64,000 bases of DNA from Mytilus californianus (Eukaryota), in the NCBI RefSeq assembly GCF_021869535.1, contig NW_026262582.1, positions 28,210,001 through 28,274,000 of the forward strand. The letters run 5' to 3'. A program made the translations under genes and the position numbers. Position 1 is the stretch's first letter; the number at the start of each line of letters is the position of its first letter. Shown here piece after piece: positions 4,501-61,306 of this stretch. The notes beneath the pieces are model-generated. The model did not search any database. It had not been told where the DNA came from and saw only the letters and a program-made list of their open reading frames with translations.

Positions 4501-4511
4501 TCAATACTTAC

Positions 4512-24159: not shown

Positions 24160-24490
24160 AGAAGAGAGACGAAATATATCTAAGGGACATTTAAACTCAT
24201 TAGTAGAAAAAAAACTGACAATGCCATTGCAAAACAAACGAAAAATGATGCAAAGACAAACAGTATACACAACACTACATTGAAAATCAAATAATGTGCA
24301 ACACAAACCGCACCAAAATTCCGGGGGTGATCCCAGGTGCTCTCGAAGGGTTAGCACATTTGGCACCCGTTGTGATGCTCATGTATGTACAAACCGGGTT
24401 ATAAGTGTAATTGGTAGATCGCCTTCGAGGACAAAGGACGTTGTTGTGGTTACGACATTTGGAACATATCCGTCGTCCTCTGTCATATTA
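24160..24490 (-). mobile_element. Naiad-type family 2 3' UTR fragment
   Basis: Homologous to 40740-41027 and 42595-42926. Confidence 0.65.
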
Positions 24491-26642: not shown

Positions 26643-26924
26643 AGGTGATGTTTAACTGAACAGTCTTTCTCAATGGTTGATTTGATAATGGACTCCTTGC
26701 CACACACGTATATTCTACGTTATGATCTAGTTTTGTTGGTATTAATGTATACTTAATACTTCGACGTTTACCAGTCTTCACGGTGTTGTTGTTTCGTATG
26801 AGCGATAATGTTACATGAGATCTCCCACTTTGAACCCTGCGTATGATACTTAGTGCAATGTTTTCTGTTCCATGTATTTTATTATCTTTTGTTTCGTTAT
26901 CAAACGTCATATTCGTAGGCAATG
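26643..26924 (-). CDS. Gene B second Ig (C2-like) domain exon
   Basis: 282 nt, phase 1-1; TLPTNMTF...LSIIRRVQSGRS...LDHNVEYTCVARSPLSNQPLRKTVQLNIT. The expected B-strand Cys is Arg (CGC). Confidence 0.8.
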
Positions 26925-27805
26925 CTTAAACATACAAATTCAACAAAAATGTTATTACCCAGCAAGAATTAAGAACAAAACTAATGAACAAAAGAGATTG
27001 TATAGTTAGAGAGCTATGTGTATACTTGATTCGTAATACTAGTAACTCAAACTACGGTTCGCTAACAGATTGGGATTATTTTATTATTATTAACATGATG
27101 ATTAGTGGATCAAGTTTTTATGTTCGAATATTAAATGAAGTTGGCCAAAATGACCATAGCATACATATACTTTTTTTATCTCATGGTCTTACCTTCCTGA
27201 AGAATTAGATGCATTTTAGTGTACAAACGGAGATTTGATTACCTAGAATAAGTAAGGTTTAAAATAAAAGAGGTTTGCATTTTTTGAGCTGTATTAAGTA
27301 CTGAATTGGAAAAACTATATTTGAATGACAAGTATAAAATAGTAACTGATAGCGAACACACTTATGTTTTATTGATATTCATAGAAAATAAAAGTAACTG
27401 TTACATTTACAAATATGTACATCTGTTATTGCGCTAAATATAGAAATATAGAGAATTTTATGACGCTGTTGTTTACAAAGCAAATGCAGCACGTCAGACT
27501 AAAATGTAAGTTAACCGCTTGACTGAATCTTCGATATAATTTAATGACTAGTTCATGTTTATTAAGTTTCCTGGCTACGAAGATTACTTTAACGCAATTT
27601 GAATGATTGACTTCTAAAACATTTTGAATTGTACAGTATCATAATTTTTTTTTCCGATTTAGAAAGAATTAAAACATGATTGTAATAAATTGCAAAGTTT
27701 CTGATGGTCAATTTATTTCGTTTCCTGGTCTTCAGATAAGTGACTGCAATATAACAATTTTTTGACATTTTCTTCTAATTGAAACTTACGTATTTCTTTA
27801 CTTAC

Positions 27806-28072
27806 TTTCCATTTGTAAAGTATAACGTTCAGAATTGCAGTAGTAGAGACCTTCGTCCAAACTAGACGCATTAATTATCTCTAGGTCAAAATTGTTGGTT
27901 TGATTTCTTCTGATGACTTTTAACCAATTGTAATTTTCGTCAGGTTCGTATGTCCAACCCCGTGGGTACGTCGAAAGGTGTGCTGATTTATTCCACCATG
28001 AATATGTACCATCGGATGTATATTTGAGTAACACTGTCGACCCTTCTGGATATAATATAACAGTGGATGCTT
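27806..28072 (-). CDS. Gene B V-type Ig domain exon
   Basis: cttgcag acceptor, gtaagt donor, 267 nt, phase 1-1; ASTVILYPEGSTVLLKYTSDGTYSWW...FDLEIINASSLDEGLYYC. Confidence 0.85.
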
Positions 28073-28326
28073 CTGCAAGATATTTTATACGTTATTGATT
28101 TGATCGAAATAATGTTTTGCATACTGTTATACGTACGGAAGTGCATACCTTACAATATACAATAATATATGAACCTCTTTCTCATACTTTATGTTTGTAA
28201 GCAAACATATGCATTAGATATACCGACTGCATTAGAAACGATCGTTTTCACCAATAATAAAGTGTATGACTACTGTAAATAGTTTTGAAAAGGAAACATT
28301 CTGAAAATACATACTAGACATATTAC

Positions 28327-31600: not shown

Positions 31601-34377
31601 GTATTTTGTTTCAGTCGTAAATATATTTTGAAAAAATGAAATGTCAAAAAGAATTCAATATCGGTCAAAGTTACATATCTTTACCTAGATACTGACCTAC
31701 TCCCTATGCAATAACTAACATCTGTAATATACGATTAAAAAATCGCCTTTTTCCGCAAATATAACAGAAAACATGGAATACAGCTCAAAGTGACATATAT
31801 TTTGCTTGGATACGTGCCTGTTCACAAAGATTCATTTTTACAAATGTACGGATGATGCTCTAACCGAGATTTGAACTTGACCATTAAACGTAAAGGTCAC
31901 AGAAGTATGACATCTGACATGTTGAAATACTTATTCCTGTTACTAGCTTTTTATTTTGCTTCCCTAAAGTAGAAAAACGTCTTTATCAATTTTGCTGCAC
32001 TATATTTTTTTTTTCGTTCAAGATCAGAACACAATTCCCGTTTAAAACAGGGGATGAACTTGGGTGTTGACAAACTGACAACATCATGCAAAAAAAAACC
32101 GCAAAAATACCAACAGAAAACATCACCATGCAAACCACAACATAGTAAACTAAGAACTGAGCGACACCAAGCCCACCAAAACAATTATTAAAAACAAATT
32201 GGCCTGCAACGCTAGTGTTACCCATAATATTGCACATTGATGTATAACTCAACGTATATCAAATTTCACTTGCATTCAGTGAGAAATGGAATAAACGAGG
32301 ACATGAGAAAAGGTATGATATTATAAGAAATATAACAATTCCACGGTTTTCTGTGATACAAACATTCCGTAAAGGTATTTCAAATAATTATGACGCATGT
32401 AAAACTATCGAAATTTTGATTCGTTCCTTGAAAGGAACAACATTAAGCTTCTATCGAGGAACTCGCAGTTTAAAACGCAAGTTCTGGATTATCGTACCTA
32501 CTAAGAGATACATATTTCGCATACATTTGCTTCCTAAAACTCGAAATTGAAAATAAATGTTTCATCCTATGTTGTACAGTTTGGTATATCAGCTGAACAT
32601 CGTTGTCGATTTCAAGGTAAAATTCAAGGTATGACTTATATCTTTAGTTAACTGTTTAATATATTTCATTTCAAGGTAGGTGGCGACAGATGCTATCAAT
32701 TTAGTAAGCAAAGTAAGTCATGGTTACAAAGTTACAGACGAAAGATATGTACATGTAGCTGTCGTTCCTTCTTGTGGAAATACCCTGTATAAAGTCTATT
32801 TTATGCAACAAAGAAACATGTCGACAATCATTGTATAGCTTGTTATTTAACCTTTCAACTTGAATGACTCGAGCGTCAATGATAAGTAGCGTGTAGACAA
32901 CACGCGCGTTTTGCGTACAAAATAATAAGCCTGGTAGTTTTCTTTTATCTATAAGTGATAATCATATCTACCAATATATTACTAAAAATACATACAAGTT
33001 TTGTCTTTAGTTTTGATAATTGTTGTTGTCAGTACTTTAAGTAATTTTGTGCTGAAGACATATCTTTTTGCATTTAAATCTATTCAAAACCTGTATAGAC
33101 ATGGGGCACGTTTAAGCTTGACCTATGGTATAGACATCTATTGATCTCCAAATGTCATTTTTTATATCACTCAATGAAGTGAAGACCACCTTTTCCCTTT
33201 TTATTATAATTATCCTGTTAATCTAATATAAAGCTATGTTTAGAATGAACTCGCTTTTCATTCTTTTACAATTGTCCATCACAACTGAGTTTTATTTTCC
33301 CTTTATAACAAGCCATGGTGTTGTGCCGGGAGCTGTAAGAAAAAATATTAAAACAAATAAAATAAAGTTCTGCTACATTTAGTTGCCAAAGTCAAGAATA
33401 TTCTTATTGAAATAATATATTGCTTAAAGGTCTTTTGTCCTTTAAAATGCAATATTTCAGTTAATATTTTGTAATTATTGTTGGCCCATTGTATTGGAAA
33501 TTACTTGAAAAAAGAAGAAAAAGAGATAGAAGAAGGTTCACTGCGCGTATTTCATCAGTTATAATGTATTTCTTCAGTCAGTGTTAATTTCTGTAAAAAG
33601 ATTTAAATATAACGGTCCTCTTCGAAGGTTTAATGGACGTCATCATGATTTTGTTGACCATTATTGAATATATGTGTCTTAGTTAATAATTACTATATAT
33701 TTCATTTCTGGTGGTCACAAGTCTGTCCTCCTTTCTTTGATTATTACATCACTAAATGTGACTCCTCATCTGAATTTTTTTATCACAAGCAATACGATTA
33801 GAATTAGATGAAATTGACTCAATAAAAGTCTTCATTTATCTAAAACTATAGAAACAAAGTGTAATTTTAGTTATATCCTTTGACCTATTGACCTATTGAA
33901 TAAATAGGTCCGTTCATTTAACTCCTCGGTTGGTTTACCTCAGTAAGAATCAATAACTACTATACGTTATGTTTTGTTATTGAAATCGTGATTTTGATAA
34001 CTCATTACTTAAAATTTATTAAATTTTGTGTACAAACTATCGATGTTGTTTATTTATAAAACTAGTCGAATATGAAGAAATTCAATAATTTCAGACATTC
34101 GAACCTCAAAAATATTTGAAATTTTCTCGATATATGGATTAATCAAAACATACGAAAGCAAAAAAAAAATCCAAGTTGATGAAAATTTAACTTTTTTGTT
34201 TCAAATATGACTGAAAAGGAAATGAACTGTTTTAAAGATGAAATAAATTTTTAGTTAAAATAAAACCAAATGACAAACATTATTACAAGAGTTCTATAAT
34301 TTGATATATTATAGAGACTTTATATTAACTTTGCCGATATGAAAATTTTAAAAATTGGTTCTCAAGCATCTACTTAC

Positions 34378-34541
34378 TTTGTGTTTGGGACAAATCTATC
34401 TGGAGTTCACATCTGTCCCCAGTAGTTATAATAGATCCATGTGGAGAACTCTGACAGTAACATGAGTAAGTCTGACCTTTTTTACACACAAACCACCGTT
34501 CAGGCAAGGTGAGCTTTGACATGGATCATTGTTGTTTGTTC
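34378..34541 (-). CDS. Gene C second EGF-like exon with 1-nt frameshift
   Basis: ttccacag acceptor, gtaagt donor, 164 nt (3n-1); GTNNNDPCQSSPCLNGGLCVKK/GQTYSCYCQSSPHGSIITTGDRCELQIDLSQTQ; paralog of the intact exon 53248-53409. Confidence 0.8.
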
Positions 34542-34778
34542 CTGTGGAAATATACTTTGGCATTGCACAAGGTCAGGTTTTTCTCTAACTGTTCGTGACG
34601 TCTTTACACTAAATCCATTGGATGTTGGATGTGTACTGATTGATATTTTAGTCTTAGCTACATGATTATTTTTATTTGTTGTTATTGGCTTTGAACTAGC
34701 TGTCAGTAACTTTTTTTGTTTTTTTTTTTTGTTTTTTTGTTTTTTTTTTGTTGGGGTGGGGGGGATGGGGGGGGGTTA

Positions 34779-35113
34779 AAGTCCATTTATTTGTTTTCTA
34801 GTCTTTATAAAACATCTTACGTGTCAGATAGTGTAAGTAGATGATGGTTGTATTGTTGGATGATTCTATGATCTTTAAAGTACAAATATCCATTTCCGTA
34901 ATGGGGTTTAGAGATAGGATTTGCAGGAATTTACTGTAAAGTCCATTTATTTGTTACTAAACTTTTAAAAGTCTTTATAAAACATTTTATTTAAGTTATC
35001 AGATAGTGTAAGTAGATAATGGTTGTATTGTTGGATGATTCTATGATCTTTAAAGTTCAAATATCACTTTCGGTCAGGTGATTAGAGATAGGATTTGCAG
35101 GAATTTACTGTAA
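34779..35113. repeat. Local tandem duplication, about 160-bp unit x2
   Basis: GTCCATTTATTTGTT at 34781 and 34941, each followed by near-identical sequence to GGAATTTACTGTAA; preceded by T and G tracts. Confidence 0.8.
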
Positions 35114-35860
35114 ATGATTTGGCTACCCAATTTGTCCTTTTGGGTTAGGATCCAACTACACCTCCCAAATATTCCAAATATTTTGAGGACTTTCGTGCTT
35201 AAATTCATGTGGTCTTAACCGAACTTCCTTTTTCAGAATGGCGAAATTATAATCTGTGAATAAGTTTATAATTTGTAAGTAATATATGTCAAGTTCTTAT
35301 TAATATGCGGTAAACTTTGTTATTTTTTTTTTTCTTTGCTTATTAAAGCTGCCGCCGTGAAATTATACAGGTGTTTGAAAATATGGGTTAAACGCTGTCA
35401 ATTAAAATACATCTTGTTAAATGTTATGGGATACGATTATACTAATTTGTGAACGTGTCATAACTTACGTTCGGTAGGAATAACGCTGTGTTTCAGATCT
35501 CAAATTATCATTATATACGTAATTGGACAATCACTAACGCTTTATCACTCTTTCTTGAAAATTGAATGATTAACGTAAACATTCATAGACACACAAAGTC
35601 AAGCATTGGCGAAATTCGAAACAGTGGTGCCGTTTTTTCTGCTATGTATTATATGCAATGCGATACTTGACTTGTGGCTTTTGAATTAAGTGTAGCGATT
35701 GATTTTGCTGCTATTTCGGAGTTGCCAACTTTTGCACAACTAAAGAAGGTTATACCACACAAGGAGATGAAAAAACCTAAGTCGTTTTTAAAATTTGATA
35801 AATGTTATCTTACACAGAATGAAGTTCCAGAGCTCGTTTTCATTATTACTTTAAACATAC

Positions 35861-35965
35861 CCAATGCTTGTTTCAATGTTGTCGATGATGGTCCATTTGT
35901 AGTTGTAGCGTCAGTAGATTGCATTGTATGTACTGTTGTTTGTGGTATATTAGTCGTTTGGTGTG
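35861..35965 (-). CDS. Gene C Thr-rich linker exon
   Basis: 105 nt, phase 1-1; HQTTNIPQTTVHTMQSTDATTTNGPSSTTLKQAL; acceptor context homologous to 54143. Confidence 0.75.
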
Positions 35966-36915
35966 CTTAAGTAAATGTAAACAATGTTCACTTTAATTTA
36001 TTATCATAACTGAGTTGATTATATATTTGATCCATCACTACTTAAAGTTTTTCATACTCATACTTCTTTATTAATAAATTTGAAAGGATATCTTAAAACA
36101 TAAATGTTTTTCTCCCGTTTTGCAGGAAAGATATCAAAAGAAAAACCCCTAATTGACTGTGAACGCACAATGTATTCAAACAAAATGCAGAAGTAGATAT
36201 GCTCGATTCAACAACTGTTACCACCAATTAGTTTAGTTAAATGTTTCTAATAAAGAGTTGGCATATCATATAGGTACTTAATGTACACAGAAACTTGCTG
36301 ACTTGATCATGAAGCATTCGAACAAGTAATATGCAGTTGGACCATTTCTCAAGTACGCCTTTGGTAAATAAATATAATCCTTATCACTAATGAAAAAAGA
36401 GATAGAATCGACGTCTTAGGTGTTGAAATAACTTTTAAATGTAGGAAATAATCGACATGGCTAACATCTCCTGGATATTTGGATAATCAGTTATAAACAT
36501 CTGAATCCTGCTGCGCAAAATTGCTATATAACAGGAATATTCTCTAAGTAGTTATGTTTAGTTTTCGGTGTACTTTATTTGCGTATGTTGTTCTTATATC
36601 AAATGTTATGAATTTGGAGAAGGATCTGCTTCCAGAGCACCGGTGATCACCCCGGTGATATTGGTGGGGTTCGTGTTGCTCAGTCTTTAGTTTTCTATGT
36701 TGTGTTTTGTGTACTATTGTTTGTTCTTTTCGTCGATTTCGGTTTTTGCCATGGCATTGTCAGTTTGTTTTCGATTTATGAGTTTGAATATCCCTTTGAT
36801 ATCTTTCACCTCTCTTTTCTCTTCTTCATAAAAGCGTGAGTCAATATAATGAATGTGCTTGAGAGAATAATGAATAATTCGTTGTCTGTTACTAATGTTC
36901 AGCTTTCATACTTAC

Positions 36916-37098
36916 AGAAGTTATATTTGAAACCAACTTCGCAACTAAGTCCGATATATATCTCATAGTGCGTTGGAGTATATTTAGTTTTACAGAAACA
37001 CTGGTAAGAACTGACTTTGTTCCTACATTCTCCTCCGTTCTGACAAGGGGAACTGCGACAATGATCTATCACTGTTGTTGTTGGCAATGTACTGGTTT
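36916..37098 (-). CDS. Gene C first EGF-like exon
   Basis: 183 nt, phase 1-1; DHCRSSPCQNGGECRNKVSSYQCFC...GLSCE, six EGF cysteines. Confidence 0.85.
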
Positions 37099-37904
37099 CT
37101 GGAATAAAAATAATTACTACAAGTAACAGTCAGAAATGCACAGCTTTATTTTATATTCTTTAACAGAATTATTCTTTGACGAGAGAAGACTAAACATTTG
37201 GTTTGTCATAAAAAAAATTCTGGCTAAACATCTGTCTATTTACCGAAAAAATAGCTGTATTCATGTACTTTTACTTGTGCTTTGATTAATTTTTGTTAAC
37301 AAAATTTGTGATTGTATATTATATCCAAAACAGAACTAGCGTTTAATATTTAGCGTCAAATTTCACTAGTGTGTTACGAGAGGTTAAAAGGGTATTTCAA
37401 ACCGAAAATGTCGTTAATTCGTCCGTAAATTCGGTAGATACACATTTTTTTATTTTCCAGAATCTCAGAATTCAATGAAATTGCTTCAAGGCATACAATA
37501 ATGACCTGTGTCAAACTGTGTCAGGTCATTATTTACCATAAAAAGGAGCCGTAGGGCGTGTTAATACATAACCGCTTAAGAAAAGAATATCCCACTTCAA
37601 TGTGATAGGTAAAATAGGATTAATGTCTGAAAATCTTTGCCGAAAATTGTATTTATTTTGTATATATACAAGTCAGATAATGAACAAGTCTAATTGAAAA
37701 CAACGTTCAAACCTATGATTGCGTTGGATAAAAACCGCAATTTTTATACGTGTGCATGCAAAACAAATTTCTTGGTAGAGGGGTCTAAATACAGCACAAA
37801 CTGTGTATTTTAATGTTTTAATTTCTTGTCCTATAACACAATTGAGTCACCCTCTTTAAATGAAGTCAATATCATTATTAATATTGTTAAAACTAACAGT
37901 GCAT

Positions 37905-38360
37905 ATCCCAGGAATAGATATCCTAGAATAGAGAATATAAACGGGTAAGATATCAAAAAGACGACAACCCAACCAAATGGCAGAAAACCGCCCAAGGCCT
38001 CCAATGGGTCTTTAACGCAGCGGAAATTCCTGCACCAGGAGGCGGGCTTCAGCTGGCCCCTAAACAATAATGCATACTAGTTCAGCAAAATGAACGCCAT
38101 ATTTAACACCGAAGCATATATAAATGAACAAAATATTAAAAAAAACACGCAATACTAACAAAGGCTACGGGTTCTTGACTTGGGACAGGCCAAAAACGCG
38201 ACGGGTTAAACATGATTTGAAACTTTATATGGCAAATCCTTGCGGAATTTTGGGTCCTCAATGCTCTACAAGTTCGTACTTTATTTTGGCCTTTTAACTT
38301 TTTATTATTCGAGAGTCTTTTGTTGCAAAACGTGCGTCTGCCGTACAAAATTATAATCCT
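37905..38360 (+). mobile_element. Decayed family 1 retrozyme interrupted by a Naiad family 1 UTR fragment (about 37927-38220, opposite strand)
   Basis: TATCCCAGGAATAGAT at about 37905 resumes as ...GGCAAA..TTTTGGGTCCTCAATGCTC after 38222; the hammerhead CTGATG core is deleted. Confidence 0.6.
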
Positions 38361-38867
38361 GGTATCTTTAGTGAGTTTGTTTTACTATACTACAGACGAA
38401 CACAGGTTTTATTTTGGTAAATCTAATAAAAAAAACTTACAACTAAGCAGATCATATTTGTTTGACTTAAAGAGTAAAATTTTTGCATTTTCAAAAAACA
38501 TGTGTTACTGCATAAAGTTACTTGTGACTTGTCTGGGCAGCTATCTGAAACTGGTATTTGATCAGGTTTTTTTTCAGTTTGATGGATTACATGTTTACCG
38601 ATTACTTTAAAACAGATCGATCGAGGAATCTCACTGTAAGGTCGAGACAAGGACGCTGAGGCTGAGCAAGTTATATTCCTGAATTGGCACATTGTGTTTT
38701 ACTCTTCGATATGTTCTGCAAACCAACTTTACTCTCATTTTATTTCAAAATAAAAAAAACGTATTCTATTTTACATGAACCTATTTCTTTATCTGCTTCG
38801 AAGACGTATATCAACGTAAAACCAAGATTTCAAATCTCTTTACTTAATTTTTTAAGTGCATACATAC

Positions 38868-38942
38868 CAGTTCTGTTGTTGGAGCACATGAGCTCCTTAC
38901 ATTGTTCACATGGTGAAACGTCGAAGCAGGTTTGCGTGGTAT
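38868..38942 (-). CDS. Gene C small Cys-rich exon
   Basis: attttcag acceptor, gtatgt donor, 75 nt, phase 1-1; DTTQTCFDVSPCEQCKELMCSNNRT. Confidence 0.55.
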
Positions 38943-39670
38943 CTGAAAATATGATAATCTATTTGCTAGAACAAACTAATGTGTAATATTAAACTAAATG
39001 CATGAGGTTATCGTCATTTGTGTTTTTATTGTACTTTTAACCATATGATTTAGGTAAAATTAAGGTTTTGTTATATTACTCGAAGGTGTCCGAGGCAAAC
39101 GCGGATATAAAAAACAGCTGATGAACAATACAAGAAATAACGCCAACAAAGTTATTTAGAAAGGGATGGATTTCAAATCAATTCATCAGTATAATAGAAT
39201 AAAATACCTAATTAGACTTATCAGCGGATTTGCATTTCATTGAGCAATACGACGAACCACCTGAAATCACCCCCAGTTTTTGGCGTGGTTCTTGTTGCCT
39301 AATCTTAAGATTTCTATGTTATGTTTTGTTCACTTTGTTTTCGACTTATGATTTGGTACCTTTCGTCTCTATTTTACAATATCATCGTATGTGTTTCAGA
39401 AGACCTTTGATATATTATACAATGATGATATTCTATGCATTTACAGGTAATAAGACAACCACCTAGCCATTAATAAATCTTTTATCTAAAGTTTATTTTT
39501 TTAATTTGCTTCTAAATATATCTCATATTATATGTCTAGACATAAAGAGATGTTTTATGATTGCCAATGAGACAACTATCCACTAGATTTGGAGCTATTT
39601 TCCTAATGCATGTAGTTTACATGTCTGGTTGGCTGGCTTGCTTACTTTGTTTGTATGAATGTTTGCTCAA

Positions 39671-50880: not shown

Positions 50881-53247
50881 GATTAACGCCATCGGTAGTA
50901 AAAAAAAACAAATCTGTATCCATTTGTGCCTGGACGACTTTTAATTACAAATGCAAGTACAAAAAACAAAAGTTTATCAATGATTGTGCATTATATAATT
51001 GGTACTAAAGAACAACACACGGAAAAGACCTTTTAATAAACATCTTTTCTAAGTTTGGATTCATTCTGTTCCGTGGTTCTCATAAAAATATATATTGAAA
51101 AGCTGACGATGACGGACGACGGCCGCATTGTATAGTAATAACTTACATTGACTTTTTTGCCCAGCATAGGGCAACGTTAAATATTTTTCAGGGATAATTA
51201 TCACCTGTTATCATTGTGCTTGTTTCAGCAGCTGCAACGCTAATTGGTAGGAAAAACATTTGACATCATTTTTATAGTAGAGTAAGACACTTATATTATA
51301 ATTCGAAAGGCCTATTGGTTTCAGAAGGGAAGACTTTTGAAAAAGTTCATAAACAAAGCACGGCAATTGACGTGATTTGGTGATAAAAGTTCACAATGAC
51401 TCCTTTTGTAAGGTGAGCACATACTAATGCAGTGTAAAATGAATTGTCATAGTGTAATGTAAGTAGAATTGAGAATGGAAATGGGGAATGTGTCAAAGAG
51501 AAAACAACCCGACCAAAGGACAGAAAACAGCCGAAGGCCACCAATGAGTCTTCATCATAGCGAGAAAATCACGCACCCGGAGGCGGGCTTCAGCTGGCCC
51601 CTAAGCAAAATGTGTACTAGTTCAGTGAAAATGGACGTCACACTAAACTCCAAAACATATAAATGAACTAAAATTAAAAAACATACAAGACTAACAAAGG
51701 CCAGAGGCTCTTGACTTGAGACAGGCGCAAAAATGCGGCGGGGTTAAACATGTTTTGTAAGATCTCATCTCAAATGTCTTTCAAATGTGAGTTTGAATTT
51801 AGGGAACAGTATATACTGATGTTCAAATCTCATAAATCGATTAAGAAGATACAAGTTAAGGTAACAAACAAAAAAGGAGGAAATCGTATAAACTCCACAA
51901 GGAGAGAGACCGGATGCGTCTACATGGTAAGCATCTCCTGCTTTGCATGCATCACCCACTGTGCACTTGAAATGCATACATACAAACAACAGCTACAAGT
52001 ATGTAAACCATCAATTTTTCTAGACTGTATCTTATATTGAATATGAATTATGCTGTGTTCACCCATTTATTCTTTCGTATAAAAAGTTATGAGACAAACT
52101 CATCAAATTGTATGTTATAAGAAATAAAACATTTCTGTAAAACGGCTGCTATTTTCCAAGTATGTGGAGCCAAGGTGCCTTCGTTGTTGCTGGAAAATAT
52201 GAAAGCAAATATTTGGTAAATCTACAAAAGGAAACTTTCAACTATCGATTATGTCGAGTAGGCTTTACTCTCTTTGTAATTTGTTGATCTTAGTCCTTAT
52301 TTTTTTAATTAACTTCTTTAAAACCCTTTTAATTTTCATTGTTTTTTTTTATCTCATTTTGATGGTTCAGTGCCATTAAATGTTCAAAATTCTATGTTGT
52401 AGACAGATCATATACAGATGGGTGCAGATGCCATCCAAAATTAAATGCACTTTGAAATATATTAGGTCGAGCTCGTCTGATAGGTGTCGTCACCAACAAA
52501 CAAACAGTTCAAATTCACACAGATATTGTAAGCACTTGGTTTCAAGCTAAAGGTGTCAGACCACCAAATTCAAAATCCCTATCTATTCAACCATATTTTT
52601 TTTTTCAATTTTCACAGTTTTCTAAATATTTTACCTTAAGTTTAACTTCTTAGAAACCAGGCATATCCTGAATTGTACTCGTATCACATTTATACATGCC
52701 AAATTTCAACCGACGTTTAAAGTCTTGTAATGAAAAACGACTGTTCAGAAGGCAACTACTACTGAAAACAACTCCTGCTTTTCTTGAAACCTTAAATAAT
52801 CATTCTATGGGGCGCATTAATCCTCATTTGTCAATGCAAACTCATAAACAAGTAAATATAGTCTCAAAATGGTCTAAATATATTTCAATTTCACCAAAAG
52901 TTTAATTTTTACAATTCTTTTTTTTTTTTTTTTTGTTTAAGTAAACAATGACCAAAAGCACTATGTTTTGTCAGGGATGGGTTACTTTTATATTTTAAAT
53001 TGGAGTTGGTGAATTGGTGGTCTGATGCTTTAATCTCTTTTTTGTTGCTTTTTAGTTGTTGTTTTTTTTTTCGTTGGGGAGGAGGGGGACTTTTTAGAAT
53101 CTAAAAAATCTATGTGCAGAAATTAATTTTTATACATAAATTTGAAAAGACCATTACCACTAGTATATTAAACTATTTTCATAAATTTAAGGCAATGTTA
53201 ATTTATCAACTTGTGACAATTTGTATCAATGAGATTAAAATACTTAC

Positions 53248-53409
53248 TCAATGTTTTTGATAAATCTATGTGAAATTCACATCTCTTCCCAGTATTTATA
53301 ATAGAACCAAGTGGAGAACTTTGACAGTAACATAAATAAGACAATCCTTTGTCCACACACAAGCCGCCATTCAAACAAGGGGAGCTTTGACAAGGGCTGT
53401 TGTTCGTAG
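53248..53409 (-). CDS. Gene D EGF-like exon
   Basis: 162 nt, phase 1-1; TNNSPCQSSPCLNGGLCVDKGLSYLCYCQSSPLGSIINTGKRCEFHIDLSKTL. Confidence 0.85.
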
Positions 53410-54029
53410 CTTATAAATAAAAAAATAATTCATCACGTTTAGCTAGTGCAAAATGCATTCATGTTGTTATTTGTTCATTTATGTATTTATTCATTTATTC
53501 ATTTAGAAAATTTAGAAAATGTAAGATCTATAGTTTGTTGATAAATACACAAATTCTGTATTTACAAAATACAAAGTCATGTTGATATTGCGATAAAACA
53601 GCCTAACATTATTATATATATCAGCATATAATCAAATAGTATAGTCTGTTTATAAACTGAATAAACATGAACATGGGGAATGTTCTACTGTCTGTAGCTC
53701 AACTTTGGAGTTCTTTGGTTGGGTTGTTTTCTCTTTTTTGTTGTGGTGGAGGGTGTTGATAATAAACTCATCATAGATCACATTTCATGGAAGGAAATAA
53801 AAAAATACTCATATTTGCCTTTAAAATTTTGATAACATGTATGTATATATAGCTAGTTCCTTACGTACTCACCTTTTTTTTATTCCCTCAGTTTTTGTTT
53901 GTTACCTTGATTTGTCTCTTCCTAATCGATTTACGATATTTGAATATCGGTAAAATTACTTTCGCCTTAATTTACTGCATGAACCTTCCAGTGTTTCATA
54001 TATATATCACTGATGTTCTTTCTTATTAC

Positions 54030-54143
54030 CTATTTGTTGTGTCCCAATTTTTGGAGATTGGGTGTCTGGAGTAGACGTGTCAGCAGGTAAAGAGGTAGGT
54101 GATACTGTTATTTTTGTCGTCTTCTGGTCAGTTGTCTGGTAAC
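54030..54143 (-). CDS. Gene D Thr/Pro-rich linker exon
   Basis: 114 nt, phase 1-1; YQTTDQKTTKITVSPTSLPADTSTPDTQSPKIGTQQI. Confidence 0.75.
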
Positions 54144-54489
54144 CTTGGTAATGTAAACAAGACCATGAAATAGATACATTTGGTTGTAACTTTTACTCAT
54201 GAAAGAATATTCAAATATTAGCAAAGTTTAAGAAGAAAATACGTTTAATATAAAGCTGTTGTTTGTCGCCTCTGAATTTTCATAATTATCAAGTCATATG
54301 TTTTTATTACAAAGTGCCACCCATTTCAGGCAGTTTAATTCATCTAAATAAATGAAATCTAGATATATGATTTTTTGTAAGTTGGTTTATAATACGATTT
54401 ATCTATTCAACTGATGATCCACAATAAATAGTAACACAATTTTAAGATATAACAGTTTTTCCAGTTTTACATGTATGATATATGTATAC

Positions 54490-54739
54490 CTGATGTTTGT
54501 TTTAAAATGTTTGTAGTTTGTTTGTTCGCAGATTGGATAGTAGCTGTTGGTATTGTTGTCTGGTTTTGATGCTGAGTAACTTAAAGAAATATTATTCATT
54601 TTAAAATTTAATGTTGAATTAAAACTGTACGAATTCGTGTGAATAATTAATGCTGTAAATCTCTCTATAGGAACGTGTAAAGTAATATTACAGTTTGCAT
54701 CTTGTGATAACGTTGCAGAAATATTTGTAATTTTATTTC
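54490..54739 (-). CDS. Possible gene D exon, Asn-rich with several N-glycosylation sequons
   Basis: Open 250-nt segment with AG/GT ends and two Cys, but phase 1-2 does not fit the neighbouring exons. Confidence 0.3.
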
Positions 54740-54770
54740 CTTTAAACAGAAGCAGGATTTTGACACGTTT

Positions 54771-54774
<4 letters not shown>

Positions 54775-54816
<42 letters not shown>
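54775..54816. repeat. (TC)n microsatellite, with a short (GA)n tract at about 54848-54862
   Basis: Directly visible. Confidence 0.95.
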
Positions 54817-54819
<3 letters not shown>

Positions 54820-56693
54820 CGATCGAAATTGTCTCTAGAAATCACTTGAGAGAGAGAGAGAGATCTCAAAAAAATGATTTCCGCAGTCAATAAATAAAGG
54901 ATATTTGTAATAGTTTATTCTTTAATGTAATCTTAAAACATCGTCTTCTCTCGTATGAAGTGACCTCTGATATAAAAGAGAACCATTGCATTTAGCCCAA
55001 ACATAAAGAATTGTTTACAAGGCTGGTGAGAATACTAGTATGTGTGTGTAAAACAAATGTTAAATAGAGCATACCACTTTTAGATTGTAAATGCATATCA
55101 ATTTTATAACATGGTTTCGGTCTGTGTTAAAGTACTCAAAAGTTATTTCATTGGTCAAAATGCTCATGGGAAGTAAAATGTGATGATAGATGGATTAATG
55201 GAAATAACACATTTTTAATGTGTTACACCGATGTACTTTTCTTGATTTACCTTCATCAGTTACATCATACCCCAAAACTTAAAGGCCAATGATGTGTAAT
55301 TACCAAAGGTAGGCGTTTTATATAGATATAAGAAGATGTGGTATGAGTGCCAATGAGACAACTCATAGCTTACTTAACGGTACTGGTTTTTCTCGTTGTT
55401 GAATGACGTTCGATGACCTACATTTGTTTAATTCCACGTCATTTGGACTGTGTTGAAAAGTTCTCATTGGACATACCCTTGGTCAACTGTGACTAAGGTT
55501 TCCATTTGTAATAATTTGTTTAATCAATTCATTTTCAAGTATAAATAGCAGAATTGTATTTCCATAACAAACGTTAAGATATATTTAGATTTTTGTTGTA
55601 GCATATCTACAAAGAATCATACATACGTATTTGGTTATTGGAGCAGAGTAAATCCTTACAAAGCTTGCATGGCTGTCGATTGAAGCAATCACCTGAAATT
55701 TCGGATAAAGGAGTACTAAGCTGTAAGAAATATTCACTTCAATACATTGTTAGTATTTTGGTATAAAAAGTAACCCCTCTGAACAGACACCCCTCTTCCA
55801 ACGTATTTTCCTCTATAATAGTCTTATATATAAAGGGGAGTAATTAGTACAGGCAGCAGGCAAAACTTTCAGTGACACAATGGACTGAAACCCTGTTAAT
55901 AACAGGCCGTTCTACCGAATCCCCAATGAAAAACATGACTTAATCATGCCATATTCAACTATATTCTTATTCTTATTCTCGAATATTTTTCGGTTATGAC
56001 AGCTGGTAAAGATTACAAATCTTTGATTATTCAATTGATGGGATAGAGAATGGAAACTAGAAATGTATCTAAGAGACAACAAACATGCAGCCCAAGGCCA
56101 CCAATAGGCCTTCAACGCAACGAGGCGGGTTTCAGCGGTCCCCTACACAATTATCGTATATTTGCTCAGCAAAATGGACGACACACCGAACATACAAATG
56201 AACCAACATTATAAAATCACACAAGACTAACAAAGGCTAAAACTGTTTTCTTGAGCTTGATATTTGAAATAGACACTCAGCTATTACAGATACCAAATCT
56301 GGCAGACACTAACTTCGCTTGTTATAACCTTGTACTTCAGTTACAAATCGAGGAGGGTGTCGATCTTGTAGCTGGATTCTATTGTAATTATTAAATGGTC
56401 TTTTATTAAAATTACATTAGCTGTAAAAAGAGAAAATGAAGAAATACGTTACTTTAACTAATGCCAAAAAAAATGTTAATCGAGAAATGATCGATTGGTG
56501 TTCCTGTGAAAAGATACAATGGTTGCTTAGGGTTAATTGTAGGTGTAATCATGTTAGAACATTCAATACATTGTGATAACAATCGTCTATAACAGAAAAT
56601 CATACCAGATAGCGTAGGCAAATTAAACTCCCAAAAATATACCCCTGAGTGAAATCAGGTCTAATGAAGAAGATTTGATGCGTATGCATATAC

Positions 56694-56837
56694 CTCCACA
56701 ATCGCATACTCCACATGTAGAGTAGCATGCCATCTTCTCTGCGCCGGTCATCATTCCTACCATTGAGGATTTCATTCCTTCCATCATTCCTTTCATCATA
56801 TTGGCGAAGAAAAATCTTTTAGAAATACTTTTGTTTC
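56694..56837 (-). CDS. Gene D exon with KR|F motif, Met-rich segment and CYxxCxxCDCG
   Basis: catttacag acceptor, gtatat donor, 144 nt, phase 1-1; GNKSISKRFFFANMMKGMMEGMKSSMVGMMTGAEKMACYSTCGVCDCG. Confidence 0.8.
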
Positions 56838-57527
56838 CTGTAAATGAAAATAAGACTTTCTAAATTTCGTCCGCCCGAATGACTGTTCTGGATTTACCTT
56901 TACCAGGCATGCTCAAATCTGAACAGTGGAAAGCCAGACATGTGTAAATACATAGAAACGTTTTGAGCCGTATGACCGAAAGATAACTAAAAAGAATAGC
57001 ACAATTATGAAGAAGAGTAAGCAGAGTTTGGGTATGAATGTGATTATCCTGTTTTAAAAAAAACCCAAAGACAATGGAAAGTTGGACGTTTGAGTAAGGG
57101 CAAAAAAAGAATCTTCATTCCCCCTTCCCCGCATTTTGAACAATACAAATCCATCCTTTTAGACTTGGAACTTCTAATTTCATATTTATCGGTTTTCGTT
57201 TCTTTAACTATGCAGATTTGCGGATGCTTAATTTTGTATTTCATTCTTCTTTCAGAAGAAGGCAAAGTTCATACAGTACAAGATGCACAACAAATGATTT
57301 GAGTCTCCAAATGAATGTGGATTGATATGAGCCGTATACAGTTTTCCACGACGGCTGGAAAGTGAAAGTTATTATATTCTCCTCTGAATAAAAATAGATG
57401 AATTAAAAAACACGTGAAAGGTTCCTGTGCGCACACAACAATGTTAAGTTAATAAAAGAATGGGAGAATTTAATTAATGCATACATGGTGATTCTCTTCT
57501 GGAAAAGAAGTTGATGACATAGATTAC

Positions 57528-57591
57528 CTTTCATGGTTTCTGATGTACAGTTGTTTTTAATACGAATACCGCCATGGATCACAAAGCCTAT
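57528..57591 (-). CDS. Gene D exon completing the N-terminal domain
   Basis: 64 nt, phase 0-1; IGFVIHGGIRIKNNCTSETMK. Confidence 0.75.
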
Positions 57592-58347
57592 CTGTAATCA
57601 AAAATAATATTGTTTGGACATTTTTTTATCAATCCCTGCACAACTTCAAACATTCCTATGTTTTCCCTTTCATATAGATTTAAAGCTATTTGACGTATAA
57701 TTGATTTCACGTGGAATTATACTCCTTTTATCATTGTACATCTCACTAGACAAATTCTGCTGAAGTTTTGTGCTAAAGTTTATAACTTTTACTTTCAGAC
57801 TTAAAATGTATTGAAACAAAATATATTGTTTTATATCAAATATTCAAGAATTGAATGCAGTCTTTTTGAAAATTCATACGAAATGAAAGCAAGTGAAGAA
57901 CTACTTCCACGCTTCATGCAAATGTAAATGTCACTGGCTTTTCATTGCGTATGAACACAAATTAAAAAGTGAAAATATGTTGTATATGTGGTGTTAAATC
58001 GAGTTACAATTGTAATTACTTTACAAACAAAACTAATGAATACAATTGTGCCATGTTAATAAGCGGCAACATATAATATCAAATGCGTTAATTTGTAATC
58101 AGGAACCGAAGTAATTAAATTTCAAAATATATTTTATTGCGTAGCAGGTTCAGCATATCTATAGCCAATGACCAAACCATACATACCAGTGTAATTGGTT
58201 TTCAAAACGGTCTTAGTTCTGGATTAATAAATAATAATATTATTAATTTGTATATTTTGACTAGTTTCATTCGTTCAGGAAAACTATATTTTCAAAGGTC
58301 GATTGAAAACGACTGATAGAAACCATACTACATATGATAAATCTTAC

Positions 58348-58548
58348 CTCTCCTTTAATAACAACACCATAACCTCCTGTATAAGAGGCTGTGATCCTCA
58401 AACAGTCTTTTGTTGTTGTTACAATTTGGGTTTCGTCTTTGGAATAATGTATATTATATACATGCAACGACCCATTAGTAGAACAAACACAGTCGTATGC
58501 TTGTGAAAGGGTTACAAACAGACTTAATACAGCTAATGTGATGATATT
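58348..58548 (-). CDS. Gene D exon: signal peptide plus N-terminal Cys domain
   Basis: 201 nt, phase 0-0; NIITLAVLSLFVTLSQA-YDCVC...TTTKDCLRITASYTGGYGVVIKGE. Confidence 0.85.
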
Positions 58549-60146
58549 CTGAAATAAATGTTATATTGTTAAAAAAAAAAGGGAATTTTAAAAAAATTAA
58601 TATATTCTACAATTATTTGCTTTGTTCTGGTTTGAATTTTAATAACTTTTAAGTTCAAATATGTGACTGCTTTTTCGTTTAATTTATGCGATTTGGAAAC
58701 TGGGATCCTTTGAAAGATGGAGAAACCTCCCGAAAGCCAAATACTGCAATGGTATCATATATGATTATTTAAATAGGATGTGATTTTTCTATAGATCGTG
58801 TCCGATAGTCGATGATCAAAAAAATCTTTTAATGGTCAAATATAACCAAAACAGACGAAAATAAAAACAAAAAAAGAATAGAAAAGAGAACAGAACAGAA
58901 CAGGGAAAAGAAAAAAGTATACAGGAGATATGATTTTTTCTTGAAAACAAATAGTGCAATAAGAAAATAAAAGTTACAAAATAAAATAGAACATGGGGTA
59001 TGATTGCCAATGAGACAACTCTTCACAATAGACCAAATGACACAAAAAATAACAACTATAGGTCACCGTACGGCCCTCAATAATTAACCAAGCCCATACC
59101 GCATAGTCAGCTATACAAGGCCCCGTAATGACAAATGTAAAACAATTCAAACGAGAAAACTAACGGCCTAATTTATGTACAAAATAATGAACGAAAAACA
59201 AATATGTAACACAGCAACAAACGACAACCACTGAATTACAGGCTCCTGACTATGGACAGGCACATACAGAATGTGGCGGGGTTAAACATGTTACACGTAC
59301 ACACAAGTACATAGTAATGTGGAAACTTTCTTTGTCTACATGGGTTTTTTTTTATTTTTTTTTTGTATTTTGTAAATGAATTTCTTACTATTGGAAAAAA
59401 TCATTTACAAAAAAAAATTTACCTCCTCATTAATTGTCCTTTTAAATTTTTACCAAGATTAGTTGCTAAGATCAAGAATGTCTCATACAACCTCCTTGCT
59501 AAGATAAACTTTTAAGTCTGAGAAGCACTATAAATTGAACTTTTCAAAAAGTCACGCCAATTATGACCAATTAGGCTATTTATAACTTGTCAATGAGTAG
59601 AAAAAACAACATTTGATAAAGTTTTAACAGTAAATTTTCAGAAAAAATAACTTAAGGTATCGATGTTATGTGTCAACAAATAAGTTGATGCATCATATCT
59701 ATAAACTCATCCTACAAGTGTGTCTAATAAATTTGATACATGCAAATTCGTCTTCACCAATATAGTTAGGATATTATGCCGATGTTCACATTTTGAAGTT
59801 TGTCTATATATATTCAGATTCTAAAGCCATTAATTATGCATGTCTCCAGTTTCAGAATATTCCAAAAAAAAATTCATTTTTCTTGACCTATATTTTTTTC
59901 TTTAAGTTTTTAACTCCTTAGTTAACAGGTCTAATTTTCTTGGTATTGATCGATACACGGTTTTGTGATTCAAAAGTTTTATAATATAAAGCTTAATTCT
60001 TGGTGTATTCTCTATCATAATATTTTGGGGCTAAAACGTAAATAATTCAACATAGAGTTAGTCCTTAAAATTCTTTTTTAGCCATTCCAGGGGCTTTAGA
60101 AATATAGTATATAATGTATATATGCATTTGTTTGTTTTAAACCAAA

Positions 60147-60897
60147 GATTGAATTGCAGATTGAATGAATACTTTATTTGCAAGAAGCATATACATGCTA
60201 TGGCAAACGAAAAAATATATACAATATATGACAAACAAAAGACAGCAGAGAACAGTAGTTACAAAGTATACAATAATATTATGACAATATGTGATCTAAT
60301 TTTCCAAGCTGCATTTAAATAACTGCATAGTTTTACTGTCAGAGATTTACAATGAGCTTGTAATAAATTGTCTAACTTGTGCCGATTTGGCCAAGAATAA
60401 TAAAATTTAGGTAAAAATTCTAATCGCACAGATCTATATGCTGGACATGATAAAACAAAATGATATTCGTCCTCTAAAACATTCATATTGCAACATATAC
60501 AAATTCTATTTTCTCTTTGAATATTTAGATAACGACCAACTTCAACATTTAATTTAAGTGTGCCGCTACGCAATTTAGTTAATATCGATACATTACAATG
60601 GAAATCTAGGTATTTTTCAATACCAAATACTAGTTTATATCGTTTATAAATACATAATTTGTTACACTCTTCTAAAGCTGTATTCCAGCTTTGTAAAAAA
60701 TGATCTTTAATACGTGTTTTAACACAATCAAATGATAATATACTAGTATCTTGTGAAATCCATACATCATTAAATCCAAGGTTACATAACAAATTTTTGA
60801 CGTTAGACGCCCAATTAATTTTACCATTATTTGCATCTTCGTACAAAAGTTTATAAACTTCATATGTGACTGTGTATTTAAACATCCCGCATTTCAA
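60147..60897 (-). mobile_element. 5'-truncated LINE 3' end (RTE-X-like) in gene D intron 1
   Basis: ORF 60259-60897 has post-RT motifs (W...V...L...G, LR.G...L.VE.GRY, CICC..EDEYHFVLSC zinc knuckle), then AATAAA and a TTCAA-type tail. Confidence 0.85.
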
Positions 60898-61303
60898 ACA
60901 TTTTTCTGTGTACTATAGTTGCTAACGCTTCAATAATTTCACAATGAGATAGTCCTGTAAAATTCATTTTTGAGTTATTCTAGTAGCTTTAGAATTATAG
61001 CATACATGCAGTGGTTACGTTTCAGACTGAACGTGTGTGTATATACGTCTCGCTTCTAGTGACTTAAAACATTAAAACAACACTTTACTATTTCATGCGT
61101 CCGAAGTGCCTTTAAAATTTAAAGTTTGCATCAAATTCCATTTACAAATGTTACACTAAATCAAAAATCTGCGTGCTTACACATCTTTGTATGTCTCGCT
61201 GCTAGTGACATACAATTATCATCAGTCACAGTGACACTCTATATAAACTAAACCAAAATATAAAGATTGTCTTCATTTTATATTTTATATACAATAGTCT
61301 TAC

Positions 61304-61306
61304 CAT
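61304..61306 (-). CDS. Gene D probable start codon (ATG at the end of exon 1)
   Basis: TAGAATG|gtaaga, strong donor, phase 0 matches the 58548 exon. Confidence 0.6.

Follow-up and report, generated by a model that had tools for sequence, protein, structure and literature searches.

Bivalve SH3b-PGRP proteins provide a precedent for pattern recognition, and the binding of microbial cell-wall polymers has been shown or proposed for them (PMC3308963, PMC11810698). Big-defensin precursors, another relevant system, have a prodomain that ends in KR or RR, a region rich in Cys preceded by a hydrophobic N-terminal one, and an amidated C-terminus (PMC7203481). Here, we have analyzed a window of 64,000 nucleotides from Mytilus californianus (assembly GCF_021869535.1, contig NW_026262582.1, positions 28,210,001 to 28,274,000), which contains two real, tandemly duplicated nine-exon genes, designated C and D, for secreted mosaic proteins.

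Gene models and shared architecture

Both genes lie on the minus strand, and each of their nine exons was rebuilt from the sequence, with AG at all acceptors and GT at all donors. The coding part of exon 1 is a bare ATG in both genes, exon 2 is 201 nt long in phase 0-0, exon 3 is in phase 0-1, and the subsequent modules are in phase 1-1 throughout, which confirms the original prediction of two paralogs with matching exon phases. All motifs listed in that prediction are likewise present, including an 18-aa signal peptide (M plus 17 residues, with the cleavage end SQA/YD in D and TQA/QY in C), a 4-Cys N-domain (CxC...TTTKDCL...GGYxV...G/xG[YF]V...C), a KR/F site (the K codon is split over exons 3 and 4 in C, and the site lies entirely within exon 4 in D), CYxxCxxCDCG, Thr-rich exons, and EGF exons.

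The predicted proteins (~294 aa for D and ~314 aa for C) share a module order: signal peptide, a ~70-aa beta-rich 4-Cys domain, a dibasic site followed by Phe, a segment specific to each paralog (rich in Met in D, hydrophobic and rich in Gly/Ala in C), an 8-Cys module (consensus CYxxCxxCxC...C[FW]xxxPCxxCK[DE][LF]xC), one or more Thr-rich linkers, EGF (one in D and two in C), and the tail PWxxIxGK directly before the stop, which is encoded by a short conserved last exon (coding part 41 nt). The Pfam EGF scores are 25.3 bits for D exon 7 and 27.4 bits for C exon 6 (cut-off 21.5). The dibasic residues are KR in C and D and RR in M. edulis C, and the dibasic site plus Phe is conserved across both paralogs and all orthologs. 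The number of Cys residues is even in each module (4, 8, and 6) and no transmembrane segment is found in either protein sequence, both of which fit an oxidized extracellular protein.

Some 55-85 nt before the ATG of gene D lies a conserved promoter-proximal block (61362-61391), presumably the promoter, that carries the TATA-like motif ATATATAGGAC. This block is collinear with 45575-45604 of gene C (84% identity over 31 nt), and the 5′UTR just past it is near-identical in M. edulis and M. coruscus. Exon 1 (61304-61359, 5′ end approximate) comprises 5′UTR and ATG (61306-61304) with the donor GTAAGA. The CDS models of M. edulis and M. coruscus open with ATG/gtaaga in the same context, and 57 nt are present upstream of exon 2 in record 11 of contig X2. 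Exon 2 (58348-58548) encodes the signal peptide from its second residue on (17 aa) together with the initial 50 aa of the putatively SH3b-like N-domain, carrying CxC, TTTKDCL, and GGYGV (orthologs 78-84% identical), and exon 3 (57528-57591, 64 nt, IGFVIHGGIRIKNNCTSETMK) provides the end of this domain with the fourth Cys. The dibasic SISKR/FFF, a Met-rich helix in which 9 of 27 residues are Met, and CYSTCGVCDCG are all encoded by exon 4 (56694-56837, 144 nt), followed by the second half of the 8-Cys module in exon 5 (55627-55692, 66 nt, DCFNRQPCKLCKDLLCSNNQI; orthologs 84-90% identical). A Thr/Gln-rich linker exon absent from the original prediction, exon 5b (54490-54579, 90 nt), corresponds to residues 95-123 of M. 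coruscus P0007; it is used in the 293-aa M. coruscus model P0022 and skipped by models of the M. edulis group. The mucin-like Thr/Ser/Pro-rich linker of exon 6 (54030-54143, 114 nt) and the EGF-like domain of exon 7 (53248-53409, 162 nt) precede the coding part of exon 8 (52149-52189, TTKAPWLHILGK plus TAG), a conserved C-terminal tail that was located by tblastn with P0007 and P0001 and agrees with the CDS ends of D orthologs.

Transcripts support the predicted junctions of D, since 58348/57591, 57528/56837, and 56694/55692 (exons 2-3-4-5) are spliced in contigs X1 and X2 (two related organisms, ~90% identical), with X1 reaching into exon 5. Both contigs continue beyond the donor at 53248, and in record 2 of X1 the match ends exactly at 53248 and is followed by 52 nt more, indicating that the donor at 53247 is used and that exon 7 is not the terminal exon. 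The complete exon chain is given by annotated D orthologs (260-293 aa), and the whole model, including the ATG-only first exon, is matched by proteins of M. edulis, M. galloprovincialis, M. trossulus, and M. coruscus. Zero reads were found on D exons in one same-species RNA run, of which ~6% was read.

In gene C, the counterpart of the D upstream block is found at 45575-45604. The candidate start codon (45529-45531), placed by collinearity with D, marks the end of exon 1 (TCTAGAATG followed by GTAGGT, collinear with CTTAGAATG followed by GTAAGA in D, and 95.5% identical in M. coruscus). Exon 2 (44528-44728) encodes the rest of the signal peptide and N-domain sequence, and is 75% and 90% identical to the C copies of M. 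edulis and M. coruscus, respectively. Exon 3 (43208-43280, 73 nt) encodes TGYVNIDIGRIEKSCEQKTRKDET and ends one base into the Lys codon of the KR site, and its junction recurs in M. edulis model P0023, which covers exons 2-7. Exon 4 (41879-41977, 99 nt; 72% identity in M. edulis, dN/dS 0.28) continues from (K)R with the Gly/Ala-rich hydrophobic FLLGDIGLGAISMATAAS and then CYISCSSCDCGTE, and exon 5 (38868-38942, 75 nt) completes the 8-Cys module. EGF-like domain 1, absent from D, occupies exon 6 (36916-37098, 183 nt; EGF_CA 23.4 bits, under its cut-off; 81% identity in M. edulis), followed by a Thr-rich linker in exon 7 (35861-35965, 105 nt) and EGF-like domain 2 in exon 8 (34378-34541). The coding part of exon 9 (PGTTPWLVIKGK plus TAA in the ancestral frame, 33292-33332) was recognized by motif search and alignment with the last exon of D, and its M. 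edulis counterpart is TGTTPWLVIKGK at L018:16315-16350. The original span (34378-61306), in which both genes were taken to end at their EGF exons, is therefore too short, and the unit covers about 33292-61360.

One base has been lost from the A6 run at 34478-34483 in C exon 8 (164 nt instead of 165 nt), resulting in a frameshift and a stop after 18 codons. This deletion is the single gap in the DNA alignment with D and occurs in this assembly only, the M. edulis counterpart (L018:15786-15947) being one intact open frame. Gene C could thus be a pseudogene or truncated allele in this individual, with only D being fully functional here, and such a reading would also suit the higher overall dN/dS of C (~0.5, compared to ~0.32 for D), the 8 non-synonymous and 1 synonymous changes that separate its exon 2 from that of M. 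coruscus, and the fact that the C annotations of other species are all N- or C-truncated. However, the remaining exons, splice sites, and last exon of C are intact, the deletion lies within a homopolymer, a place of assembly errors, and the M. edulis RefSeq model of C terminates via read-through of the exon 7 donor, which implies that some isoforms may not need exon 8. We consider the decay of C a serious possibility, although we lean away from it.

Distribution and selective constraint

Searching the whole 1.65-Gb genome with exon 2 yielded only two matches (E 2.9e-38 and 1.9e-13), a two-copy result that was repeated with C as the query; the likeness of the two exon 2 peptides (46-47% identity) is therefore far beyond chance. 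Among 1.8-5.8 billion proteins, relatives turned up only as Mytilus entries, whose database names are 'uncharacterized', 'EGF-like domain-containing', or the misleading 'notch homolog 3-like'. As far as databases show, the family is confined to Mytilus and one animal lineage from metagenome contigs. The D-to-C tandem is kept in M. edulis and M. coruscus, and the duplication took place before the M. edulis group and the M. coruscus-like lineage diverged. The earlier statement that no named family could be recognized holds true, since nothing besides the EGF modules was recognized with Pfam, NCBIfam, PHROGs, or a sequence search of the PDB. C and D form a small, fast-evolving, and lineage-restricted orphan family, in which known module types occur in a new arrangement.

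The lowest dN/dS values are found in the KR/helix/Cys exons and EGF (0.06-0.28), including 0.06-0.19 for the EGF exon and 0.10-0.22 for D exon 4 against its orthologs. The N-domain shows values of 0.35-0.75, and the Thr-rich linkers reach ~1.4-1.6, with the ~1.6 of D exon 6 representing unconstrained sequence. An unusually strong divergence between species was also observed at the D locus.

N-domain fold and candidate functions

The N-domain signature GGYxV...G.xG[FY]V resembles GWxkV...GktGWV, which we take to be the core of bacterial SH3b domains. When residues 18-92 of the M. coruscus ortholog were submitted to the ESM Atlas (language-model features and ESMFold structures), SH3b/SH3_3 clusters ranked first by features (0.91) and SH3_3 proteins appeared in seven of the nine rows by structure (TM 0.64-0.72), while an internal control, residues 97-160, produced scattered helical matches only (TM <=0.43). 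No match to the N-domain was obtained with the SH3_3 HMM even at E 10, two AlphaFold2 models (pLDDT 29 and 33, unusable) agreed on six beta-strands and nothing more, and nothing like the N-domain was detected within 10 kb upstream of the nine PGRP exons of this genome. The SH3b-like fold originally proposed may thus claim real but single-source support from the Atlas, to which HMM and sequence comparisons added no link.

We infer an immune or matrix role for C and D. The best overall explanation, to which we assign a probability of roughly 0.45, is that they are convertase-processed secreted recognition/effector proteins in host defense, a role favored by the parallel between their layout and that of big-defensin precursors. 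The N-domain would fold into an SH3b-like barrel and act as a binding or targeting module, and a proprotein convertase in the secretory pathway would cleave after the dibasic site, baring a hydrophobic (C) or Met-rich (D) helix as a new N-terminus that would be anchored by the disulfide knot and presented on an O-glycosylated stalk with EGF. Gly-Lys at the C-terminus might be trimmed and amidated, the site of action would be mucosal or hemolymph surfaces, and C and D may be specialized via their differing exposed segments. On the other hand, the dibasic site lacks Arg at P4 and is therefore no classical furin site, and the 8-Cys spacing matches no defensin.

It is unlikely, in our view, that C and D are structural or matrix proteins of byssus, shell, mucus, or cuticle, in which the mucin-like linker and EGF would form extracellular material, the N-domain would bind matrix polysaccharides, and the Met-rich helix and Cys cluster of D would buffer redox or, through Cu(I)-type MxxM 'Mets' motifs, bind metal. 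Mollusc matrix proteins commonly contain Thr-rich linkers and EGF, the Met residues of D are spaced i, i+1, i+4, i+5, i+8, ... on one helical face beside eight Cys, their exon being among the most constrained of the gene, and zero D reads in one RNA run would be expected of a gland-restricted product. However, C has its Gly/Ala hydrophobic segment instead of any Met-rich stretch, both proteins are small, non-repetitive, and present in two copies only, no byssal or shell signature (Tyr/DOPA-rich, Gly-rich, acidic, or collagen-like repeats) is seen in them, and a literature search found no proteome paper citing the accessions.

A secreted signaling-ligand precursor appears more improbable still. 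Prohormone-type processing at KR/RR and Gly-Lys amidation would then free an EGF-containing growth-factor-like or pheromone-like product, consistent with the conservation of both the dibasic site and the terminal x-Gly-Lys-stop in the two paralogs and all orthologs, with the EGF exon having the lowest dN/dS, and with the soluble single-EGF growth factors, free of a membrane anchor, of molluscs; but each protein has a single dibasic site, prohormones do not typically contain a large folded N-domain or an 8-Cys module, and the EGF, judged by its sequence, looks like a generic Notch/ECM type and not an ErbB-ligand type. Gamete recognition or fusion, in which a cleavage-exposed fusion-peptide-like segment of C, EGF, and rapid divergence would serve sperm-egg interaction, is very improbable, for although the N-domains evolve fast (including the 8:1 ratio of C exon 2), the D locus diverges unusually between species, and FLLGDIGLGAISMATAAS behind KR has a composition that we presume to be like that of a class-I viral fusion peptide, the hydrophobic segment is conserved among orthologs and no transmembrane or GPI anchor is present for holding a fusogen in the membrane.

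Relation to known systems

As in bivalve SH3b-PGRP (M. edulis HE609081; Magallana gigas MgPGRP3/5), the products of C and D are secreted bivalve proteins, and their N-domain, predicted to be SH3b-like, directly follows the signal peptide as the SH3b-type domain does there. In SH3b-PGRP, however, standard domain models do detect this domain, whose fusion partner is an amidase_2/PGRP domain, whereas the C/D N-domain matches no SH3b model and has no PGRP partner. Bacterial and phage SH3b domains (Pfam SH3_3 PF08239; NlpC/P60 hydrolases, lysostaphin-type enzymes) are similar to it in size (65-70 aa), in the all-beta prediction with 5-6 strands, and in the Atlas comparisons mentioned above. Unlike them, the C/D N-domain has no sequence-profile similarity to SH3b, contains four conserved Cys (two predicted disulfides) that are atypical there, spans two exons with a phase-0 intron between, and is joined to eukaryotic modules (EGF and mucin-like linker). 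Six-Cys EGF-like domains on phase 1-1 exons are shared with Notch-type and other multi-EGF proteins, but C and D have only one or two such modules, no LNR, transmembrane, or ankyrin parts, and ~300 aa in total. The NCBI name 'neurogenic locus notch homolog protein 3-like' for the M. edulis C ortholog was rejected as an annotation artefact of the EGF match.

Membership in the big-defensin family was also rejected. C and D show no sequence similarity to big defensins, their eight Cys (C3C2C1C(3-9)C5C2C5C) differ from the six-Cys beta-defensin pattern, their 'prodomain' would be a folded, Cys-containing domain, and they additionally carry a mucin linker and EGF and are three times longer. The likeness is in layout only: both follow the same order of parts (signal, KR/RR end, hydrophobic segment, disulfide-rich region, and amidation signal), and both are fast-evolving and lineage-diversified in bivalves.

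Gene models and transcripts of C and D

Genes C and D lie in an assembly of 1.65 Gb (175 contigs, approximately 32% G+C), and the window contains no N runs. Their exons, all on the minus strand, were located as paralogous pairs by a six-frame view and a translated self-comparison of the window; each exon was then read with its flanks and boundaries were set by script, with an AG acceptor and a GT donor at every exon of both genes. The first coding exon is the ATG only, both in D (61306-61304, minus strand, followed by GTAAGA) and in C (45531-45529, minus strand, followed by GTAGGT). In both genes, exon 2 has 201 nt and runs from phase 0 to phase 0, exon 3 runs from phase 0 to phase 1, and the modules located 3′ of exon 3 are all of phase 1-1. 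The coding sequence of D totals 885 nt (294 codons plus stop) and that of C totals 944 nt, 1 nt below a multiple of three.

Every motif given in the original prediction was found in the C and D exons. When orthologue proteins were mapped onto the window, all D junctions were confirmed and two D exons absent from the original prediction were added: a Thr/Gln-rich exon (54490-54579, minus strand) and the terminal exon (52149-52189, minus strand). C and D share 46-47% identity in their N-domain exons. Searches of the whole genome with exon 2 of D and of C returned these two genes only, with no further paralogue, and a second genomic copy of D exon 4 was not found. In the 5′-UTR of D (61335-61345), an upstream ATG opens a 7-codon uORF here, at a position occupied by ATA in M. 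edulis and M. coruscus.

With regard to transcripts, D exons had zero reads in X5, an RNA run with the same species label, of which approximately 6% was examined. Logan transcript contigs from related organisms (X1 and X2), approximately 90% identical to D, are spliced as modelled. Record 5 of X1 (485 nt) connects 58548-58348, 57591-57528, 56837-56694, and then 55692 onwards, with two small junction offsets attributed to substitutions adjoining splice sites, and in record 11 of X2 the 57 nt located 5′ of exon 2 correspond to exon 1. The EGF-exon match of X1 record 2 ends exactly at 53248 and is followed by 52 nt of other sequence, which indicates that the D donor at 53247 is used.

Exon 8 of C, its second EGF exon (EGF2), is a homologue of D exon 7 with a shifted reading frame: compared with D and with M. 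edulis C, one base is missing in an A6 run (34478-34483), which represents a genuine frameshift allele or else an assembly error in the homopolymer. It is possible, and only tentatively proposed, that C is a null allele in the sequenced individual, a question apart from that of function.

A repeat core of approximately 46 nt (…GAAGATGTGGTATGAGTGCCAATGAGACAACTC…) is present in intron 5 of D (55316-55364), and related copies occur at 44072-44128, 39539-39589, and 62193-62288. In all runs examined, its read depth lay between hundreds and tens of thousands; since reads diverge on either side, the element is the core of a transcribed interspersed repeat of very high abundance. Neither this core nor any other part of 33000-62000 had a match in Rfam. 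Intron 1 of D holds a 217-aa open frame (…EDEYHFVLSCPAYRSVRLEFLP…; 60262-60912, minus strand), which we take to resemble the C-terminal portion of ORF2 from a non-LTR retrotransposon. Another interspersed repeat has four copies with 60-87% translated identity (51463-51663, 45766-45912, 37923-38090, and 4047-4145), which are distributed over the C-D intergenic region, a C intron, and sequence far downstream. Open frames on the minus strand at 4504-4893, 23786-24190, 26581-26925, and 27801-28091 bear Ig signatures (GLYQCRI, GNYTCLATN, EYTCVA, and GLYYCNS), and the genes downstream of C are predicted IgSF neighbours on this basis.

Orthologues and evolutionary divergence

The two exon 2 peptides were combined into a profile and searched against 1.84 billion representative proteins, in which the real matches were two: P0001, a 260-aa M. 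edulis protein, and P0004, an 82-aa metagenome-derived exon. The other four (P0002, P0003, P0005, and P0006) were repeat proteins matching over short stretches only and were rejected as spurious. Additional D orthologues were obtained by cluster look-ups and a homologue search in M. galloprovincialis (VDI20135.1 and XP_076089322.1), M. trossulus (XP_063417240.1, N-truncated), and M. coruscus (CAC5423602.1, 293 aa, and CAC5423603.1), all of which are named only 'uncharacterized' or 'EGF-like domain-containing' in databases. Literature searches on the family accessions, or on methionine-rich EGF-like Mytilus proteins, found nothing. The D coding sequences of M. edulis and M. coruscus likewise start with an ATG followed directly by gtaaga, after a near-identical 5′-UTR, and in both species a C-type gene lies directly downstream of the D-type gene.

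An alignment-based search identified C models in M. edulis (P0023) and M. galloprovincialis (the fragment P0024). P0023, a 215-aa protein named 'neurogenic locus notch homolog protein 3-like', reproduces C exons 2-7; its first residue is an internal Met, and its end results from read-through of the exon 7 donor. Downstream of this model, the M. edulis locus contains an unannotated intact EGF2 exon (L018:15786-15947) and an unannotated last exon encoding PWLVIKGK (L018:16315-16350), both of which belong to the ancestral gene. Public models of the family (P0008, P0023, and P0024) are partly wrong, and those of M. trossulus D and M. edulis C begin at an internal Met. The analysis corrects this annotation by supplying the last exons that were missing, by showing that RefSeq models of M. 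edulis and M. trossulus are N-truncated, and by marking the 'Notch 3-like' name as misleading; it also flags the possible C null allele.

Outside Mytilus, the exon 2/exon 3 pair of the N-domain was found with identical splice positions in one lineage, the third known for this pair and represented by metagenome contigs of 39% G+C (L011, 399-602 and 1762-1840; also L012-L014; protein cluster P0004/P0011). These contigs also carry reverse-transcriptase genes and are, on this evidence, DNA of an animal host.

Nei-Gojobori counts were made exon by exon. The dN/dS ratio of D was approximately 0.32 against both M. edulis and M. coruscus, and that of C approximately 0.5 against M. edulis. The lowest values (0.06-0.28) were observed in the KR/helix/Cys exons and the EGF, intermediate ones (0.35-0.78) in the N-domain exons (D versus both species, C versus M. 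edulis), and the highest (1.4-1.6) in the Thr-rich exons. C exon 2 differs from that of M. coruscus by 8 non-synonymous and 1 synonymous changes, a dN/dS of approximately 2.3 based on very few sites. Judging by the exon-wise ratios, the segment after the KR site is conserved within each orthologous line, although it is wholly unlike between C and D.

The closest public sequence at the locus is that of M. coruscus, with 92% identity in non-coding DNA 5′ of C, which places the sequenced genome in the Mytilus lineage of this species. The 5′ half of C is near this species (exon 2, dS 0.02 and 95.5% identity; flanks, approximately 92%), whereas D is equally distant from M. coruscus (dS 0.29) and M. 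edulis (L016; dS 0.32), and window 52000-62000, in and around D, has 67-87% identity to the M. coruscus locus (L017). Possible causes of this excess divergence at D are long-persisting allelic lineages, gene conversion, and the reciprocal loss of paralogues.

The N-domain and other modules

HMM and fold searches used the window exons singly and the natural full-length proteins P0022 (M. coruscus D), P0001, and P0023 as proxies. As originally stated, no named family could be recognized: at E 10, EGF was the sole meaningful match of the family in Pfam, NCBIfam, and PHROGs, and the PDB sequence search added nothing meaningful. A CsoS2 match was low-complexity and spurious (14-19 bits versus a 1100-bit cut-off). 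EGF assignment was based on the gathering score together with six Cys in the pattern C-x-C-x-C...C-x-C...C, and D exon 7 (25.3 bits) and C exon 6 (27.4 bits) both had this pattern and exceeded the PF00008 cut-off of 21.5 bits. For calcium-binding EGF (PF07645, cut-off 27 bits), C exon 6 remained below at 23.4 bits, beginning with V-I-D-H-C versus the D-x-D/N-E-C start required, and the D EGF had no match.

SH3b domains are rare among animals. The original prediction of an SH3b-like N-domain is supported from one source, the ESM Atlas, and was not reflected in sequence models. In the ESM Atlas, residues 18-92 of P0022 fell with SH3b/SH3_3 clusters by features (score 0.91), and a structure search with the same residues gave TM scores of 0.64-0.72 to predicted SH3_3 proteins in seven of nine rows; residues 97-160, serving as an internal control, matched unrelated helical proteins only (TM ≤0.43). 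AlphaFold2 runs on two shallow family alignments (12-13 rows) had pLDDT of 29 and 33, and both of these low-confidence models have the same six N-domain strands, with helices after the KR site. On the sequence side, SH3_3 (PF08239) did not match exon 2 peptides or full-length P0001, P0007, and P0022 even at E 10, NCBIfam and PHROGs gave no SH3b match for the family, and the exon 2 profile had no match in the PDB at E 10. Comparison by hhalign with the single sequence of E. coli YgiM gave a probability of 0.15%; the YgiM relatives retrieved were all at least 83% identical, too alike for a diverse profile. Taken together, the N-domain fold is somewhat more likely than not to be SH3b-like, as far as predicted structures indicate. 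The sole PF08239 match in a six-frame search of the own genome (L015, G000:C99:10456243-10459344; a single 529-aa open frame with two SH3 domains) was rejected as an ordinary eukaryotic SH3_1/SH3_2 protein.

Possible functions and comparison with known systems

Both proteins are predicted to be secreted because they possess a signal peptide, an even number of Cys in each module, and no membrane anchor. Both paralogues and every orthologue retain a dibasic site (SISKR|F, ETKR|F, and KTRR|F), which suggests that C and D are candidate proprotein-convertase substrates. Such processing is also favoured by the constrained helix (hydrophobic in C, Met-rich in D), the 8-Cys module, and the terminal Gly-Lys that accompany the invariant dibasic residues and Phe. 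A convertase would cut at this site and expose the helix as a new N-terminus, the SH3b-like binder would be placed ahead of the exposed-helix part, and the conserved Gly-Lys might allow C-terminal amidation.

Considering the SH3b-like binder in front and the big-defensin-like order of parts, we favour by analogy a role in host-defence recognition or as an effector, with a probability of roughly 45%. That C and D are instead matrix or metal-binding proteins, as the extracellular-matrix option of the original prediction would have it, is unlikely; were they ordinary matrix or mucus components, the value of the analysis would be limited to annotation of a lineage-restricted orphan family. A signalling precursor is very unlikely, and a gamete protein highly improbable.

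Within the favoured host-defence role, a more specific and quite doubtful proposal is a new bivalve effector class combining SH3b-like cell-wall targeting with a membrane-active segment that convertase cleavage would unmask and that would resemble a fusion peptide in C and be rich in Met in D. A novel 8-Cys knot on a glycosylated EGF stalk would display this segment, and the paralogues and deeply diverged D alleles would be tuned to different microbes. If the processing mechanism proposed above holds, the family would offer a compact and experimentally tractable case of bivalve effector building through exon shuffling, the modules after exon 3 being uniform in phase. Such shuffling would have joined a binding fold of bacterial type to a hydrophobic peptide that a protease unmasks.

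Three known systems may be compared with C and D. Notch receptors combine EGF repeats, tens of them in tandem, with LNR and ankyrin repeats and a membrane-spanning segment. C and D lack this architecture and were rejected as such receptors: they have one or two EGFs in approximately 300 aa, and no hydrophobic stretch follows the signal peptide. Bivalve PGRPs with SH3b bind and agglutinate microbes (PMC3308963, PMC11810698). These proteins carry the Amidase_2/PGRP domain in the same protein, unlike C and D, in which Amidase_2 (Pfam) is absent from every exon and orthologue. No link to the mussel SH3b-PGRPs was found either: the 10 kb upstream of 9/9 PGRP exons in the own genome, all on contigs other than that of C and D, had neither N-domain similarity nor an SH3b-like motif. 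Membership in the big defensins was rejected on account of the different spacing of the eight Cys and the lack of sequence similarity; the resemblance to big-defensin precursors is one of layout alone, namely in the order of parts (PMC7203481).
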